Sequence record: NC_049383.1
DNA: 64,000 nt
Strand: one strand, 5' to 3'
Positions 5,899 to 58,985 of this stretch are shown piece after piece. The notes under the pieces were generated by a model that was given only the letters and a program-made list of their open reading frames with translations, was not told where the DNA came from and made no database searches. A program made the translations under genes and the position numbers. Every line of letters begins with the position of its first letter. Within the stretch, counting starts at the first letter, position 1.

Positions 5899-6456
5899 AT
5901 GTGGCAAGGAATTAAAAGAGAAGACTATAAATTAATAGTTGAATCAAGACAATTAGCATTTAGTGCGCACGACCGTTGGACTAATCATGATTATAAAAAA
6001 GGCGTTGGATATTCTTATCACCTGCAAATGGCTGTTGATTTTGGTATCATGTTCTTACACCTTTTAGAACCCGAAGAAAGAGCTATTGCTATTTCAGGTA
6101 TTTACTTACATGATGCTGTAGAAGATGTTCGTTTAACCAAAAATGACATAATCAAGTCAATAGAAAATAAAAGAGTGGCACAATTATCATGTAATATGTG
6201 TTGTGATATTTGGGGTGGAACTCGTGATGAAAGAAATTCACCAAGCTACTATAAAAGAGTTAATAGCGATAAACTTAGTGTTTATGGTAAACTATGTGAT
6301 AGAATGGCTAATATTACTGAATCTATATTAACTAAAGGTGAACCGACTGATTTTTATATCGATGAAATGGAAGATTTCTTATCTAAATTAGATATTGATA
6401 AAAATGGTTTCCAAGAAATGAGTTTATATCTTAAAGAAATTGCAGGATTTCATTAA
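5899..6456 (+). CDS. HD-domain hydrolase, RelA/SpoT hydrolase (Mesh1/SAH)-like
   Basis: YxYH, LHDAVED and KLCDRMAN motifs in SpoT-HD order and spacing. Confidence 0.8.
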   Translation: MWQGIKREDYKLIVESRQLAFSAHDRWTNHDYKKGVGYSYHLQMAVDFGIMFLHLLEPEERAIAISGIYLHDAVEDVRLTKNDIIKSIENKRVAQLSCNMCCDIWGGTRDERNSPSYYKRVNSDKLSVYGKLCDRMANITESILTKGEPTDFYIDEMEDFLSKLDIDKNGFQEMSLYLKEIAGFH

Positions 6457-6481
6457 ATAGGTTGATAAGAATGTTAAATTT

Positions 6482-6534
6482 TGAAAGTTTTTTAGATTTG
6501 CTATTGTAAAACTAAAAAACTTTCATATATTTGT
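6482..6534 (+). promoter_or_regulatory. Bacteroidota-type promoter within a 14-bp inverted repeat
   Basis: tgaaagttttttag...ctaaaaaactttca followed by TATATTTG; homologous cassette at about 25287-25340. Confidence 0.7.
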
Positions 6535-6566
6535 AGTGTATTTATTAAACATCAAAACAAAACATT

Positions 6567-6845
6567 ATGTCAATCGCAAGAGAAATTTTAACAGTAATCG
6601 AGAAAACAAACCAAATCGCATTAGTTGTAGCAGATGAACACACAATCGGTTATATTGTTCCTGAATGTCCTAATAAATTTCTAGTATTAAGACCAAATTT
6701 AGGTTCTTGGATGAAAGATGGTAGTGCAACTACTTTAGATAATATCAGTGAATTAAGATTATTAGAAACTAAAGATTTCGAAGAGTATAAACTATGTGGT
6801 GAAGGTTACATAAGAGACACTACAAATTACTATTTTAATAGATAA
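6567..6845 (+). CDS. Hypothetical protein
   Basis: ORF directly after promoter. Confidence 0.6.
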   Translation: MSIAREILTVIEKTNQIALVVADEHTIGYIVPECPNKFLVLRPNLGSWMKDGSATTLDNISELRLLETKDFEEYKLCGEGYIRDTTNYYFNR

Positions 6846-11496: not shown

Positions 11497-11617
11497 AGCG
11501 CGCGGAGAGAGGTTTAAAAAATTCTTATAAAAATTGTAATTAAAAATTTTGTTTTGAAAACATTTTGTTCTTTAAAATATTAATCTTTATATTTGCTAAA
11601 ATTTTAAATTTTATATT

Positions 11618-20732: not shown

Positions 20733-20802
20733 CTATTTAAAAATCCGATTTTTATAAGAATCGGATTTTTTGTATAAAAATTACATTTTTCTACAAAAAA
20801 AT

Positions 20803-20833
20803 TTTGCAGGTAATTAGAAAAGTTATATATTTG
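20803..20833 (+). promoter_or_regulatory. Bacteroidota housekeeping-type promoter for the tRNA cluster
   Basis: TTTG (20803) - 19 nt - TATATTTG (20826). Confidence 0.75.
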
Positions 20834-20849
20834 CATAAGTAATAACAAA

Positions 20850-20923
20850 GCCGAGTTGGTCGAGTGGTTAAGACGCAAGACTCTAAATCTTCGAAATCAC
20901 GGGTTCGAATCCCGTACTCGGCA
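20850..20923 (+). tRNA. Amber suppressor tRNA, anticodon CTA (reads UAG)
   Basis: Acceptor GCCGAGT/ACTCGGC-A, D arm GTC/GAC, anticodon arm CAAGA-CTCTAAA-TCTTC, T arm ACGGG-TTCGAAT-CCCGT; CCA not encoded. Confidence 0.88.
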
Positions 20924-21081
20924 CAAAGTTCTTTTGTGTAGCTCGATAGAGAAAAGTGCGTTTTATCACAGGTCTATCCGAAATATCGAGAGCAGGTAAC
21001 TTAGATGAAGGTTATCACTAGGACTTTAATTTTTATTGTAGTTGATAAGGTGAACCAATTAATGTCACCAAACTTACTACA

Positions 21082-21158
21082 GATGGTGTGTTGACATAGT
21101 GATTTGTATTGCCGATTGTAAAAACATTATAACCGTAGTTCGAATCCACCACACGTCA
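21082..21158 (+). pseudogene. Degenerate tRNA-like sequence
   Basis: GTTCGAATCC T loop, bulged acceptor GATG-G-TGT/ACA-CGTC; no clean anticodon arm. Confidence 0.4.
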
Positions 21159-21361: not shown

Positions 21362-21440
21362 GGTTGTATAGCTCAGTTGGTAGAGCGTTCGCGGGTATAT
21401 TACCCTCGAAAGGTCGCAGGTTCGAGTCCTGTTACAACCA
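21362..21440 (+). tRNA. Atypical tRNA-like RNA with extended anticodon arm, copy 1
   Basis: Canonical acceptor GGTTGTA/TACAACC, D arm GCTC/GAGC, T arm; anticodon arm 23 nt TTCG-C-GGG-TATATTA-CCC-T-CGAA instead of 17. Confidence 0.8.
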
Positions 21441-21524: not shown

Positions 21525-21597
21525 GGTCTTGAAGTTAGTGGGTTTTAACACTATACGCGGAGTATAGAGGTCACAGGTTCGAATCCTGTCTTGACCA
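21525..21597 (+). tRNA. Atypical tRNA-like RNA (no U33, CGG at anticodon position)
   Basis: Canonical T arm ACAGG-TTCGAAT-CCTGT, D stem GTTA/TAAC, CTATAC-GCGGA-GTATAG arm, acceptor with two T-T mismatches. Confidence 0.6.
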
Positions 21598-21728: not shown

Positions 21729-21807
21729 GGTTGTATAGCTCAGTTGGTAGAGCGTTCGCGGGTATATTACCCTCGAAAGGTCGCAGGTTCAAGTCCTGCT
21801 ACAACCA
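21729..21807 (+). tRNA. Atypical tRNA-like RNA with extended anticodon arm, copy 2
   Basis: Identical to 21362-21440 except two structure-compatible T-arm changes. Confidence 0.8.
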
Positions 21808-23412: not shown

Positions 23413-24366
23413 ATGAAATAGATAACCAAAAATTCAAATCGTTCTAACAAGGTTGAGCAAAGTCAAAAATTTAGAATTATAACACGCTCAGATTTAAGTG
23501 TTGGTCAAGCTGTTGTTCAAACAGCCCATGTAGCCGCGGAATTTCAAATGAATTTCCCAACCGAATATGAAACATGGTTAAAAACAAATAGAAGTATAAT
23601 TACATTTTCGGCAAAGAATGGTAAAGAACTTCTCGAATATGAGACACTCTTAAAATCAAAGGGAGTCCAAACCTATAGGTTCTATGAACCCGATTATAAT
23701 CAAATAACGGGTATCGGAATAGTACCTAGTGACCAAGCTAGAAAAATGACATCATCTTTAAAACTTTTTAGACATACACAACAAGAAATGTATTTCGACG
23801 AGGTTACAAGAGATATGAGTCGTACCGAACAAATGGATAACCTTTCCGTACTACAACATGGTGAAATGGTACACGACTATTATAAAATGATAGTTTCAAA
23901 TCAAATGTGTAACCTTTCAAAATTTGAAAAAGTACCTAAATGGTTACTCGAAAATAAAGCGTATATTCTAAATGAATTGTCTAAATTTGATTTCAACGCA
24001 ATCAAAGATTATCAAATAATGCATGATTTGGGTAAACCATACTGTATTCAAATTGATGAAAATGGTAGAAGACATTTCCCGAACCACGCGCAAGTTTCAT
24101 ATGATACTTGGAAAAAGTTAAATGGTGACCCTTTTGTTGGTAACTTAATACTTAATGATATGAAAATGCATACAATGAAGGCATCAGATATTGAAGACTT
24201 TATGAAAATAGAGGGTTACTTAATATTAATGGTAACATCAGTTGCTGAATTATACGCAAATGCTGAAATGTTTGGTGGTTATGAATCAACTTCATTCAAA
24301 ATTAAATTCAAACAGTTAGAAAAGAGAGGAAATGCTATCTTTAGAATCATAAATGAATCTAAGTAA
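23413..24366 (+). CDS. Pth2 (peptidyl-tRNA hydrolase II)-like domain fused to an HD domain; in-frame TAG at codon 3
   Basis: ATG AAA TAG then an open frame: KFRIITRSDLSVGQAVVQTAHVAAEF...W...FYEPDYNQITGIGIVP (Pth2/PTRHD1-like); C half VLQH...MHDLGKP...HFPNHA (HD). Confidence 0.75.
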
Positions 24367-38126: not shown

Positions 38127-38561
38127 ATGAATATAAATATTATTAGAGAATACCTTTTATCAGGGTCAGTTTTCGCAAACGATACAAATAATGGTAAACT
38201 TTTTTATAAAGATGGTAAATTAAACTTTGAGTTCAAAAGTGGTAATACTGATATAACTATAATGAACTACCAAATACCTGAGCATTTAAAATTGGTTCTT
38301 ATGCGTATTAGTGATTTGAAAAACTCACCAATGGCTTTAGCAGAAATACATAGCATTTATTCTAAGGCTGTGCCGATTTTAGAAAATATAAGTCATGAAA
38401 CTTTAGCAGATTCTTTGGAAAATGTTGTTAAAGATGGAACTGTATTTGAATTACCATACAATGTTGTAAAACGTCTTATTTCAATGGGTTATGATGTATA
38501 TAATCTTATTGATAGTGGTGATGCTTTAGAACTTAATGTTAAAAACACAACAAATGAATAG
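38127..38561 (+). CDS. Hypothetical protein
   Basis: ORF with TAG stop overlapping next start. Confidence 0.55.
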   Translation: MNINIIREYLLSGSVFANDTNNGKLFYKDGKLNFEFKSGNTDITIMNYQIPEHLKLVLMRISDLKNSPMALAEIHSIYSKAVPILENISHETLADSLENVVKDGTVFELPYNVVKRLISMGYDVYNLIDSGDALELNVKNTTNE

Positions 38562-39573
38562 TTTATTCCCAGTTACACATATTACACCATCAGATGAGCC
38601 ACATATATATGCAATGGTTGGTTTACCTGCAACTGGTAAAAGTACTTACGCAAGACAATTGCGTTTAAAGTTGGAAAAGGAAGGTAAAAATGCGGTAATT
38701 GTTTCACGCGATGCATTAAGAAAACAATTATATGGTTATGATGATTCGAACCTATCACTTTATTATTTGAATGATTCACAAGAAATGTTCAAGAGAATGA
38801 AAAGGATTTCTGAATTTGAAGATAATATGATTTATGATGCATTATCTAGAGGTTATAAAGTTATTTTAGACTCTTCACACCTTGAATATAAGAACATTAA
38901 GAAATTAAAGTACTGGAATGTTCCTGTTGAATTGGTTATCATTGAGGTTGATAAAAAGAACTTCAAAACTATTAAAGGTTTGGATGATAATCGTGAAAAG
39001 GGTATTGGTGAAGATAAGTTGAAAAGACTTTTTGACCGCTATAATTTCACTAGACAGAAGTTAAAAGATGAGCCTTTCGATTTCACACCTATTGAAAAAC
39101 CATCATATGATGTGATGAAAGATAATTGTATAATATTCGATTTAGATGGAACTTTAGCACACAATAATTGTGGAAGACGTTTTAATGACATGACTAGAAC
39201 TGGCGAAGATTCATACCACAATGATATTTGTAGTATATTAGAGCTTATTTCTAGAGGTCGTAATGATAATACATATAAAACTATGTTAAATCGTCAGAAA
39301 AACCCTAGAATAATATTTTGTAGTGGTCGTTCTGAGCAAGCTAAAGAAGATACATTAAACTGGATTTCTAAGATTTATAACGTACATACATCAGACCTAT
39401 ATATGCGAGAAGATGGTGACAAAAGAGAAGATTGGAAAGTTAAGCAGGAAATGTGGGCTAAATTAGAAGAGAATTACAACATTATTGCAATGTTTGATGA
39501 TAGAAGTCAAGTCGTTAGAAGGGCTAGAGCTTTGGGTTATAGAGTATTACAAGTATCACAAAACAATTTTTAA
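38554..39573 (+). CDS. pseT: Polynucleotide 5'-kinase / 3'-phosphatase (PseT-like)
   Basis: N-terminal P-loop GLPATGKST with SRDALR; C-terminal HAD DLDGTL...SGR...FDDR; start 38554 or 38536. Confidence 0.88.
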   Translation: MNSLFPVTHITPSDEPHIYAMVGLPATGKSTYARQLRLKLEKEGKNAVIVSRDALRKQLYGYDDSNLSLYYLNDSQEMFKRMKRISEFEDNMIYDALSRGYKVILDSSHLEYKNIKKLKYWNVPVELVIIEVDKKNFKTIKGLDDNREKGIGEDKLKRLFDRYNFTRQKLKDEPFDFTPIEKPSYDVMKDNCIIFDLDGTLAHNNCGRRFNDMTRTGEDSYHNDICSILELISRGRNDNTYKTMLNRQKNPRIIFCSGRSEQAKEDTLNWISKIYNVHTSDLYMREDGDKREDWKVKQEMWAKLEENYNIIAMFDDRSQVVRRARALGYRVLQVSQNNF

Positions 39574-41071: not shown

Positions 41072-42130
41072 ATGAAAGTAGATTTAAAATTAAGTGGATT
41101 AGCTCTTTTTCAAACATTACGGAACTATGAAAAACGTGGTTTGGTAATTTCACAAAGACATCCACAAAACAAAGAAATTATTATTTGGAATTATTCTAAA
41201 CAAACTCAATATGATAATCATTGGGATGAAATAACTTTGAATGCACGTAGTTTGGTAACGAATACCAAAGGTGATATTATTGCTCGTGGTTTTCCTAAGT
41301 TTTTCAATTATGAAGAACCTGAGTTCGAATTACCTGATACAAAACTCTATAATATTAAGTATTTCAAAAAGCTAGATGGTTCTCTTATCTTGCTTTTCAA
41401 TTATGAGGGTCGTTGGTATGTTTCATCTAGAGGTTCTTTTGAATCAGACCAATGCAATATGGCTAAATCAATACTTCGTGATAAATACAACGGATATTCT
41501 AATTGGTTGGATAAAGATTTAACATATTGTTTAGAACTTATACACCCATCAAATAGAGTTGTTGTTGATTATGGTGATGAAGAAGATTTGATTATGATAG
41601 GTATTTTGACATCAAATATGCAAAGTGTCGATATGTCAAAACTTACTTGTGGTGATTTCAGATATCAAAAAGAAGAGTTGATACCTTTTGATGATTTCAA
41701 ATTAATACAGCAACAAGATACTGAAAATGAGGAAGGGTATGTTATGCTATTCCCTAATGGATATCGTGGAAAGATTAAGTTTGAGAATTATAAGTACTTG
41801 CATTATTTGTATGGTGAATTTTCACCTTTAGCTATTTGGAAGTGTTTGAAAGAAAAAGATAATGATAGATTGATGTTTATAAAGGATAATACACCCGATG
41901 AGTTCTATGATGAGGTTAAAAAATGTATTTTCAAACTTAAAAAACAATTCTTTCAAATAAAGAACACAATATTAAGCGATTTAAACGACTTTTTACCTGA
42001 CGACTATATAAACGACCATGAATTGTTTAAAAGTCTCGGAAAACGTCTAATAACAGCCTTTAACGATGAATATAAGCTAGATAGGATGATATGGGATGAT
42101 ATAAAACCTAAAAACAATATTTTTTCATAA
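41072..42130 (+). CDS. rnlA: RNA ligase 1 (T4 Rnl1-like)
   Basis: ARGFPKFFNY, KLDGSL (adenylated Lys), SRGSF, ELIHPSNR, EGYV, KIKFE; ATG 41072 after TATATTTG. Confidence 0.9.
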   Translation: MKVDLKLSGLALFQTLRNYEKRGLVISQRHPQNKEIIIWNYSKQTQYDNHWDEITLNARSLVTNTKGDIIARGFPKFFNYEEPEFELPDTKLYNIKYFKKLDGSLILLFNYEGRWYVSSRGSFESDQCNMAKSILRDKYNGYSNWLDKDLTYCLELIHPSNRVVVDYGDEEDLIMIGILTSNMQSVDMSKLTCGDFRYQKEELIPFDDFKLIQQQDTENEEGYVMLFPNGYRGKIKFENYKYLHYLYGEFSPLAIWKCLKEKDNDRLMFIKDNTPDEFYDEVKKCIFKLKKQFFQIKNTILSDLNDFLPDDYINDHELFKSLGKRLITAFNDEYKLDRMIWDDIKPKNNIFS

Positions 42131-58745: not shown

Positions 58746-58985
58746 ATGAAATATAGAGATTTTTTCAAAGCAATTCCTTTTACAGCACTTTATGTTGTCT
58801 CTGTTATTATGGGTATTTCAGGATTACAATACTTGTTTGACTTAGTAATACAACCGAAAGCAAAGTTTTTGCTTTATGAAGGTGTTATAAACGACTCTGA
58901 TATTTTAATCGGAGCAATTATATTAACTTTAGTGATGGCTTTTTATAAGGCTATTTACGACAAAATGGATAAACCAAATGACTAG
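58746..58985 (+). CDS. Two-TM small membrane protein
   Basis: Two hydrophobic helices. Confidence 0.55.
   Translation: MKYRDFFKAIPFTALYVVSVIMGISGLQYLFDLVIQPKAKFLLYEGVINDSDILIGAIILTLVMAFYKAIYDKMDKPND

Follow-up and report, generated by a model that had tools for sequence, protein, structure and literature searches.

Why should a phage that terminates its genes at UAG in the ordinary way carry a tRNA whose anticodon reads UAG? This question is raised by a tRNA gene with a CUA anticodon in the jumbo phage pT24 of Tenacibaculum (NC_049383.1 / LC168164.1; 234,670 bp), the right-hand 64 kb of which (record positions 170671-234670) constitute the stretch of DNA analysed here, hereafter the window; a window position equals the record position minus 170,670. 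The phage is a lytic jumbo myovirus whose isolation source was a Thai shrimp pond, and its genome announcement reports '4 tRNAs' found with tRNAscan-SE 2.0, a resemblance to Sphingomonas phage PAU and a coverage of 1,290x. In GenBank the four genes are labelled, in order, tRNA-Sup (HYP10_gt001), tRNA-Undet, tRNA-Pro and tRNA-Undet, and ARAGORN finds no tRNA in the pT24 genome outside this cluster. An initial annotation of the window had described the first gene as an intact amber suppressor under selection for selective readthrough and had placed the phage in a Flavobacterium host, which is correct as to the family (Flavobacteriaceae) but not as to the genus, Tenacibaculum. The answer that we favour, with moderate confidence and on the strength of sequence comparison, is that the gene encodes a functional amber suppressor kept by selection in a standard-code phage lineage.

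Structure, orthologs and promoter motif of the CUA tRNA

ARAGORN calls the tRNA on the plus strand at 20850-20924, with the anticodon cta starting from position 34, and Infernal aligns 20850-20923 with the whole of the Rfam tRNA model RF00005 (model positions 1-71 of 71; 65.2 bits against a gathering score of 29; E = 3.5e-13). The cloverleaf has an acceptor stem of 7 bp, a D stem with the pairs G10-C25, U11-A24 and C12-G23, the D loop AGUGGUUA, an anticodon loop of 7 nt (C32-U33-C34-U35-A36-A37-A38), a short variable region of 5-6 nt and the T arm ACGGG-UUCGAAU-CCCGU, and the conserved tRNA nucleotides U8, A14, G15/C48, G18G19, A21, U33, a purine at 37 and the A73 discriminator are present. 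The D stem is irregular at a G13-A22 mismatch, and the anticodon stem, CAAGA/UCUU(c)G, either holds one additional C, placed between 42 and 43, or leaves C27 facing C43 as a mismatch, in which case the variable loop has 6 nt. Both the sequence and the model alignment indicate that the gene does not encode CCA, and the free-energy fold of the isolated RNA is not the cloverleaf, a discrepancy that is frequent among tRNAs and is outweighed by the covariance score. With the ARAGORN call, the full-length Rfam match and the loop CUCUAAA, the description of an intact CUA tRNA is borne out, as is its rank as the cluster's most canonical tRNA, the other three scoring 60.6, 58.8 and 37.1 bits. A link to tRNA-Ile2 and lysidine, raised by an antisense match to the Rfam model 'Plastid-ycf2' (46.6 bits, under its gathering score), was rejected as generic tRNA likeness; that model appears to include, in reverse complement, a plastid tRNA whose anticodon is CAU.

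A pattern for the tRNA scaffold matched only pT24 in IMG/VR, nothing similar was found in the metagenome collection, and for the upstream gene, gp226, no relatives were found. Two closer relatives, both uncultured and with proteins about 60-70% identical, were reached through the downstream gene gp293, whose homologs P0006 (61% identical) and P0002 (63% identical) lie on JAKLPE010000030.1 (227,882 bp; locus L282) and JAHDBD010000006.1 (231,974 bp; locus L280), respectively. Both loci are syntenic with the window, their baseplate proteins being 48-71% identical to those of pT24 (48-68% for L282), and over the 14-21 kb read from each they appear to use the standard code, with TAG serving as a stop in both. 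L282 contains a CUA tRNA of 50.6 bits, which is the first element of its cluster. Across the 21 stem pairs of the Rfam structure, the pT24 and L282 tRNAs share 9 identical pairs, whereas 10 have changed in a compensatory manner, 2 differ in one base only and still pair, and 0 are broken; the loop CUCUAAA, the D loop and even the G13-A22 mismatch are identical. L280 has, at 1147-1214 and inside a syntenic gap of 165 nt, a 68-nt tRNA-like element with the loop UUCUAAA, again with a CUA anticodon, and with intact acceptor and T arms; it scores 27.2 bits, just below the Rfam threshold, and is not called by ARAGORN. The cultured relatives are distant, with portal proteins about 30% identical in PAU, PTm1/PTm5 and MA9V-1/2.

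The 10 compensatory changes with no broken pair, the invariant loop and the shared slot therefore indicate that the CUA anticodon is under purifying selection in a standard-code lineage, and its conservation in relatives argues against both a relic and an assembly error. Conservation of the anticodon in related phages had been proposed as a check by the initial annotation; the outcome is positive in L282 and L280, in support of a function, though not of the selective readthrough that had been envisaged. Covariation with one standard-code relative and the same slot in a second make the tRNA look stable rather than caught in a brief transition.

The tRNA is preceded by the promoter motif TTTG-N19-TATATTTG, the end of which lies 16 nt from the gene. 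The -33 and -7 boxes of this pattern are those of Bacteroidetes sigma-A promoters. The window contains 18 copies of TTTG-N17-21-TAnnTTTG where 4.8 would be expected (about fourfold), a count reached in 0 of 100 shuffles, and 23 of the 53 motifs genome-wide sit 3-86 nt 5' of a same-strand gene start. The genes behind these motifs are mostly small or belong to replication and nucleotide metabolism, and only 4 copies fall within the structural block at 75-125 kb. The TAnnTTTG box before the CUA tRNA recurs in the relatives (TATATTTG in L282, TATCTTTG in L280), and so do terminator hairpins directly upstream of it; in pT24 the hairpin has the form AATCCGAT...ATCGGATT followed by a T run at the end of gp226, and is absent from the list of a simple terminator scan. 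The enrichment agrees with the earlier placement of the tRNA as the first RNA behind a host-type promoter. We infer that the motif is an active promoter, and early or middle expression by the host polymerase is a reasonable inference from it. The same simple scan, which omitted the hairpin upstream, finds no terminator between the CUA tRNA and 22200, so the tRNA may head a transcript that continues through the cluster into gp297-gp294.

As an observation in its own right, the promoter motifs of the window (among them those at 11564, 13000, 20803, 24430, 33180, 43779, 51081, 57318 and 61791) lie mostly 20-45 nt 5' of gene starts and provide a map of likely host-polymerase promoters.

That the gene is a neutral relic, a member of a decaying cluster that drifted to CUA and goes unused, we regard as very improbable. 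Such a history would suit the aberrant neighbours, the tRNA remnant in the spacer behind it, the bulged C of the anticodon stem, a TAG-stop usage that bears no footprint of the tRNA, and the absence of the tRNA from PTm1 and MA9V-1. It is contradicted by stem changes that are compensatory in 10 cases and disruptive in none, by the invariance of CUCUAAA, by a score of 65 bits, by the gene's own promoter motif and by a CUA element in one slot in three phages.

Stop codons and the genetic code

For the genetic code, the rest of the genome was read in pieces and genes were called throughout with one simple open reading frame (ORF) caller. Over the whole genome the stops are TAA in 241 genes, TAG in 33 and TGA in 13, and the code-11 coding density is 87-93% in each piece. 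With TAG read as sense, the ORFs of at least 100 amino acids (aa) add up to 84,567 aa instead of 77,790, compared with 91,927 aa when TGA is read as sense as a control. Single stops between segments that are open for at least 60 codons on each side number 5 for TAG, 14 for TGA and 22 for TAA, and the open frame upstream of in-frame TAG is no longer than that upstream of TAA. On the basis of the stop counts, the ORF-gain control, the junction counts and the open-frame test, pT24 is a standard-code phage in which approximately 11% of genes are TAG-terminated. Terminator hairpins immediately 3' of several TAG stops and large structural genes that are uninterrupted in the annotation accompany this result. 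The exclusion of code 15, which the initial annotation had drawn from the window, thus extends to the whole genome, where the gain from TAG as sense stays below that of the TGA control and no in-frame TAG restoring ORFs was found; all nine TAG stops that it had listed are true ends of annotated coding sequences, and a tenth lies at 58985.

Neither release factor 2 (RF2) nor an aminoacyl-tRNA synthetase, as carried by some Lak and Jade phages, was found among the annotated products or in a Pfam and PHROGs scan of 10 neighbouring genes, about 250 hypothetical proteins lying outside that scan. TAG stops are distributed unevenly, with 15 in the 66 genes at 0-50 kb, the replication-gene arm, and 2 in the 76 genes at 50-125 kb, a region that includes the structural block. 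Their scarcity at 50-125 kb would be consistent with late genes of high expression avoiding TAG, but a usual bias towards TAA predicts it equally well.

We consider it extremely improbable that TAG is partially recoded in a cryptic manner, with code 15 in some genes being masked by code-11 gene calling. The precedent is that Lak megaphages recode TAG mainly in structural genes, and long regions are TAG-free; however, the whole-genome tests are negative, the code-11 density is high in every piece, the large structural genes are intact, and the sole clear gene-splitting in-frame stop is TGA rather than TAG.

A separate observation concerns gp038/gp037 (L002 32477-32479 in record coordinates, minus strand), where one in-frame TGA parts a 253-aa ABC-ATPase-like ORF from 136 open codons, with no ATG, GTG or TTG among the first 23 of the 136. 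The annotated TTG start of gp037 lies within the stretch VVLPDFQGLGLG; a likeness to a GNAT acetyltransferase motif was seen by eye, and Pfam gives no match. This TGA could reflect readthrough, a pseudogene or a sequencing error, and is unconnected to the CUA tRNA.

Suppressor tRNAs are known from standard-code relatives of recoded phages, and a route has been proposed in which low GC content leads to depletion of TAG and TGA stops, then to acquisition of a suppressor and finally to recoding (Borges et al., bioRxiv 10.1101/2021.08.26.457843). Compared with this model, pT24 matches the first and third steps, having low GC content and a suppressor, but not the depletion of TAG. It resembles the standard-code suppressor phages in its stop-anticodon tRNA, low GC content, predominance of TAA, code 11 and standard-code host, and differs from them in that TAG is not its rarest stop (33 versus 13 for TGA). 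Annotated suppressors elsewhere include tRNA-Sup-CTA of Stenotrophomonas phage DLP5, the D arm of which differs from that of pT24, and tRNA-Sup-TTA of Klebsiella phage phiKp24, and the Gln-type CUA tRNAs in IMG/VR have a body unrelated to that of pT24. Lak genomes carry a CTA suppressor and RF2 and read TAG as sense in structural genes, and their tree was rooted with PAU (Devoto et al., PMC6784885). With these and with the crAss-like phages, which are likewise TAG-recoded (code 15), pT24 has in common the CUA anticodon and a Bacteroidota host, and its portal protein matches that of Lak megaphages (26.8% identity, E = 4e-32) as well as those of huge phages LR7565xx; unlike Lak, it has no in-frame TAG and no annotated release factor.

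In terms of annotation the finding is ordinary, since the label tRNA-Sup is already in place in LC168164/NC_049383, and because suppressor tRNAs in standard-code phages are already on record the novelty implied earlier was overstated. What is new is the evidence from conservation and covariation, together with the connection drawn between recoded megaphages and a relative that is in culture. The intermediate in which a suppressor precedes recoding has so far been inferred from metagenomes only, whereas pT24 is lytic, is in culture, infects a host that can itself be cultured, and is a relative of the PAU-like phages, the outgroup used for the TAG-recoded Lak megaphages. Charging, the amino acid, the level of readthrough and the value of a suppressor to a phage that does not depend on it are thereby brought within reach of ordinary experiment.

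Several observations weigh against a working suppressor in pT24. Its expression, its charging and its suppression of UAG are predictions; the anticodon stem contains a bulged C; and the remaining cluster consists of aberrant tRNA-like genes. The L280 version is without a D stem, which is hard to square with use on the ribosome, and the distant cultured relatives PTm1 (by ARAGORN over the whole genome) and MA9V-1 (according to its paper) lack tRNAs. TAG is not depleted, with 11.5% of stops in pT24 against 14% in the tRNA-less PTm1, and it is commoner than TGA, where an efficient old suppressor or the pre-recoding model predicts otherwise. Backup stops within 3 codons are not in excess after TAG (21% versus 39% after TAA). 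The share of TGA itself is 4.5% in pT24 (13 stops) and 13% in PTm1 (39 stops), the genome of which has 29.7% GC.

Possible readthrough targets, charging and proposed action

We examined the continuations of the reading frames beyond the stops, since the initial annotation had read the gene as evidence of selection for selective readthrough. The median in-frame extension is 9 codons after TAG and 6 after TAA, and extensions of at least 50 codons follow 3 of the 33 TAG genes and 19 of the 241 TAA genes. The three long TAG continuations run from gp159 into gp160 (180 aa), from gp059 into gp058 (124 aa) and beyond gp037 (59 aa), and no peptide is common to the TAG extensions. The best candidate for a fusion, gp159-TAG-GAT-ATG-gp160, was rejected: gp159 is RNase H-like and gp160 5'-nucleotidase-like, and, searched as separate pieces, their homologs lie 11 kb apart in PTm1, while the relatives of gp160 in a large protein collection are all stand-alone proteins of about 170 aa. 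Among the orthologous genes of pT24, L280 and L282, compared over approximately 15-20 kb of each relative, TAG stops are not shared, and the ortholog of gp278 ends in TAG in both relatives and in TAA in pT24.

A programmed, selective readthrough, in which the tRNA would serve to produce C-terminally extended or fused forms of one specific TAG-terminated phage protein or of a few, is suggested by the three genes with long continuations and by the conservation of the CUA tRNA. We nevertheless find it distinctly unlikely, as long continuations are as common after TAA, the extension peptides are unalike, gp159 and gp160 behave as two independent genes, and the TAG stops differ among orthologs in the 15-20 kb compared; the claim of selection for selective readthrough is not upheld.

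With regard to the amino acid, the nearest phage tRNAs found by BLAST are annotated as Glu or Asp. The D arm GGTCNAGTGGTTAAGAC together with the T loop recurs in at least 122 bacterial tRNAs, which, among the matches listed, are all tRNA-Glu and all from Firmicutes. When the variable loop and T arm are compared with 791 tRNAs of 20 isotypes from the loci of the matches listed, Glu comes out nearest and Asp next, and a separate set of phage tRNAs gives the same ranking. The augmented D helix of tRNA-Glu (G10-U11-C12/G23-A24-C25) and its T arm are present in pT24 only, and CUC would become CUA by one base change. In contrast, the anticodon is not of the YUC type of tRNA-Glu, the anticodon arm is not that of tRNA-Glu, the variable region is 2 nt longer than its 4-nt loop without residue 47, an absence not seen here, and the L282 ortholog has C11-G24 in place of U11-A24. 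A Glu identity is therefore not assigned, and the resemblance is treated as a lead. This accords with the earlier view that the charged amino acid cannot be assigned, the Glu-like body of the pT24 tRNA not being kept in L282.

The anticodon arm is of the type AAGACU-NNN-AAUCUU, shared by other CUA tRNAs as well as by tRNAs specific for Tyr, Lys, Leu(UAA) or Asn. It had been equated with that of the classical suppressor supF of E. coli; the core AAGACT-NNN-AATCTT is indeed found in many phage tRNA-Tyr(GTA) genes, which fits the comparison, and supF would have the core AGACUCUAAAUCU in common with pT24. As with supF, the mechanism would be competition with release factor 1 (RF1) at UAG. Unlike supF, a tRNA-Tyr with a CUA anticodon that arose as a laboratory point mutant of a cellular tRNA, the pT24 tRNA has a short variable region and is a phage gene that occurs naturally and is conserved. 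The earlier remark that the variable loop is unlike that of tRNA-Tyr stands, since the region is short and there is no long class II arm. Candidates for the charging synthetase are those for Glu, Lys, Gln, Tyr and Leu. From their identity rules, lysyl-tRNA synthetase would likewise accept U35 and A73, CUA suppressors are readily charged by glutaminyl-tRNA synthetase, and leucyl-tRNA synthetase disregards the anticodon.

In several IMG/VR contigs (e.g. L038, L028 and L062) we also observed Leu-UAA tRNAs of 73-77 nt with a short variable loop, unlike the bacterial class II tRNA-Leu.

For a functional suppressor we envisage the following course. Transcription of the CUA tRNA by host RNA polymerase would fall in the early or middle phase; its maturation would rely on host RNase P, on a 3' nuclease and on the CCA-adding enzyme, and its charging on a host aminoacyl-tRNA synthetase. 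At UAG it would then compete with RF1, resulting in partial readthrough of approximately 11% of phage genes and of TAG-ended host genes. Such readthrough would be cheap, because in this AT-rich genome the next stop comes after a median of 9 residues. The pay-off is most likely a general one, namely an altered handling of UAG in the infected cell, which would bring tolerance to amber mutations, disturbed host termination and, as a lasting condition, the 'suppressor acquired, TAG not yet reassigned' state that has been put forward as the path to TAG recoding; the production of one particular extended protein is less likely.

Other RNAs of the cluster and neighbouring genes

The features of the cluster and its surroundings are collected in the table below.

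Table. Features around the CUA tRNA of phage pT24, in window positions.
Feature	Position	Strand	Evidence
Terminator-like hairpin closing gp226	20741..20772	+	read from sequence
Bacteroidetes sigma-A-type promoter motif	20803..20833	+	pattern search
CUA tRNA, HYP10_gt001, 'tRNA-Sup'	20850..20923	+	ARAGORN, Rfam, GenBank, syntenic orthologs
Degenerate tRNA remnant inside 437-nt spacer	21085..21158	+	Rfam tRNA 14.5 bits, below threshold
tRNA-like with closed anticodon hairpin, copy 1, 'tRNA-Undet'	21362..21440	+	Rfam tRNA 58.8 bits
Aberrant tRNA-Pro(CGG)-like	21525..21597	+	Rfam tRNA 37.1 bits; GenBank tRNA-Pro
tRNA-like with closed anticodon hairpin, copy 2	21729..21807	+	Rfam tRNA 60.6 bits
gp293, PTH2-like + C-terminal domain	23548..24366	+	Pfam, homologs

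The two closed-hairpin genes are near-identical, and their alignment to the Rfam model places a 15-nt insert where the anticodon loop should be. Acceptor, D and T arms are good in both; copy 1 forms a cloverleaf in which the anticodon extension has helices of 4 and 5 bp on either side of a 1x1 mismatch and ends in a UAU triloop, and copy 2 folds with z = -5.1. With a closed hairpin in place of the anticodon loop, both are therefore unable to decode. One such tRNA-like gene is also found in L282 (7878-7965), with an A/U-rich hairpin insert of 22 nt at the same place, whereas a pattern for the hairpin matched only pT24 itself in IMG/VR. These genes may be the 'intron-containing' tRNAs reported for jumbo phages, or non-decoding RNAs. 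The tRNA-Pro(CGG)-like gene, which ARAGORN does not call, carries G33 where U33 is universal, contains two U-U mismatches in its acceptor stem, and is probably defective or unusual. The 437-nt spacer shows no significant structure (z = -1.0), and a ribozyme of the hepatitis delta virus-like or theta type, or another known RNA, was rejected for the spacers, where there is neither an Rfam match nor a significant fold.

Downstream of the cluster, gp293 consists of an N-terminal part resembling peptidyl-tRNA hydrolase 2 (PTH2) fused to a C-terminal domain of about 180 aa. Its match to Pfam PTH2 (22 bits) is just below the cutoff, and its homologs carry PF01981. The C-terminal domain also occurs as a stand-alone protein, and a few short forms with only this domain match the HD domain PF01966. 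In other jumbo and huge phages, the neighbours of this family include tRNAs, aminoacyl-tRNA synthetases, CCA-adding enzyme, Thg1 and transfer-messenger RNA (tmRNA). Across the gp293-family loci (L276-L279, L280, L282, L285, L287 and L289), the gp293 homolog has a CUA tRNA no more than 10 kb away in 6 of the 9 distinct phages examined, all of these loci appearing to use the standard code locally, and in L277/L278 the tRNA lies just 43 nt 3' of the homolog. Possibly gp293 is a partner of the CUA tRNA. Among the 10 genes beside the cluster that were scanned with Pfam and PHROGs for translation factors, only a thioredoxin, a DUF4494 protein and the weak PTH2 match were found.

Elsewhere in the window, genes for polynucleotide kinase, Pnk (38536-39573), and an Rnl1-type RNA ligase (41072-42130) lie 1.5 kb apart on the plus strand and form a tRNA repair pair of the T4 type, which suggests pressure from host defences that cleave tRNAs. 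PTm1 has a tRNA-splicing ligase in place of this pair.

These neighbours bear on the idea that the CUA RNA does not decode at all and instead serves as a decoy, as the dedicated substrate of some tRNA-acting enzyme or in anti-defence, e.g. against nucleases that target tRNAs, its nonsense anticodon keeping it off sense codons. We hold this to be unlikely. It would be in keeping with a cluster whose other members are non-decoding tRNA-like genes, of a closed-hairpin type shared with L282, with the repair enzymes of pT24 and PTm1, with the conserved PTH2-like/HD-like neighbour and its frequent CUA tRNA, and with the L280 ortholog, which retains the loop, the acceptor arm and the T arm but not the D stem. 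On the other hand, the loop, with U33 and A36-A37-A38, is that of a typical decoder of codons starting with U and is invariant, and every element of the L shape is kept in pT24 and L282. No known defence system was identified here as a partner, and the association with the neighbourhood may merely reflect the clustering of translation-related genes.

Retaining the functional suppressor as the preferred reading, we tentatively propose a broader possibility, which we regard as less than probable. A standard-code jumbo-phage lineage of the Flavobacteriia, comprising pT24 and at least two uncultured relatives, may have kept its suppressor over a long divergence without TAG ever becoming sense, for a benefit independent of code change. 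This benefit could lie in the manipulation of UAG termination or in a tRNA-centred counter-defence, possibly together with the PTH2-like/HD-like enzyme and the non-decoding tRNA-like RNAs. If true, phage suppressor tRNAs would have a second function beyond recoding, present within a cultured phage-host pair.

Finally, in the 352-kb phage contig BUSI22-1 scaffold_1 (L287), we observed a phage-borne tmRNA at 6215-6596, about 3.4 kb 5' of the gp293 homolog, in a locus that also contains a second PTH2 gene, pieces of a CCA-adding enzyme and Thg1.

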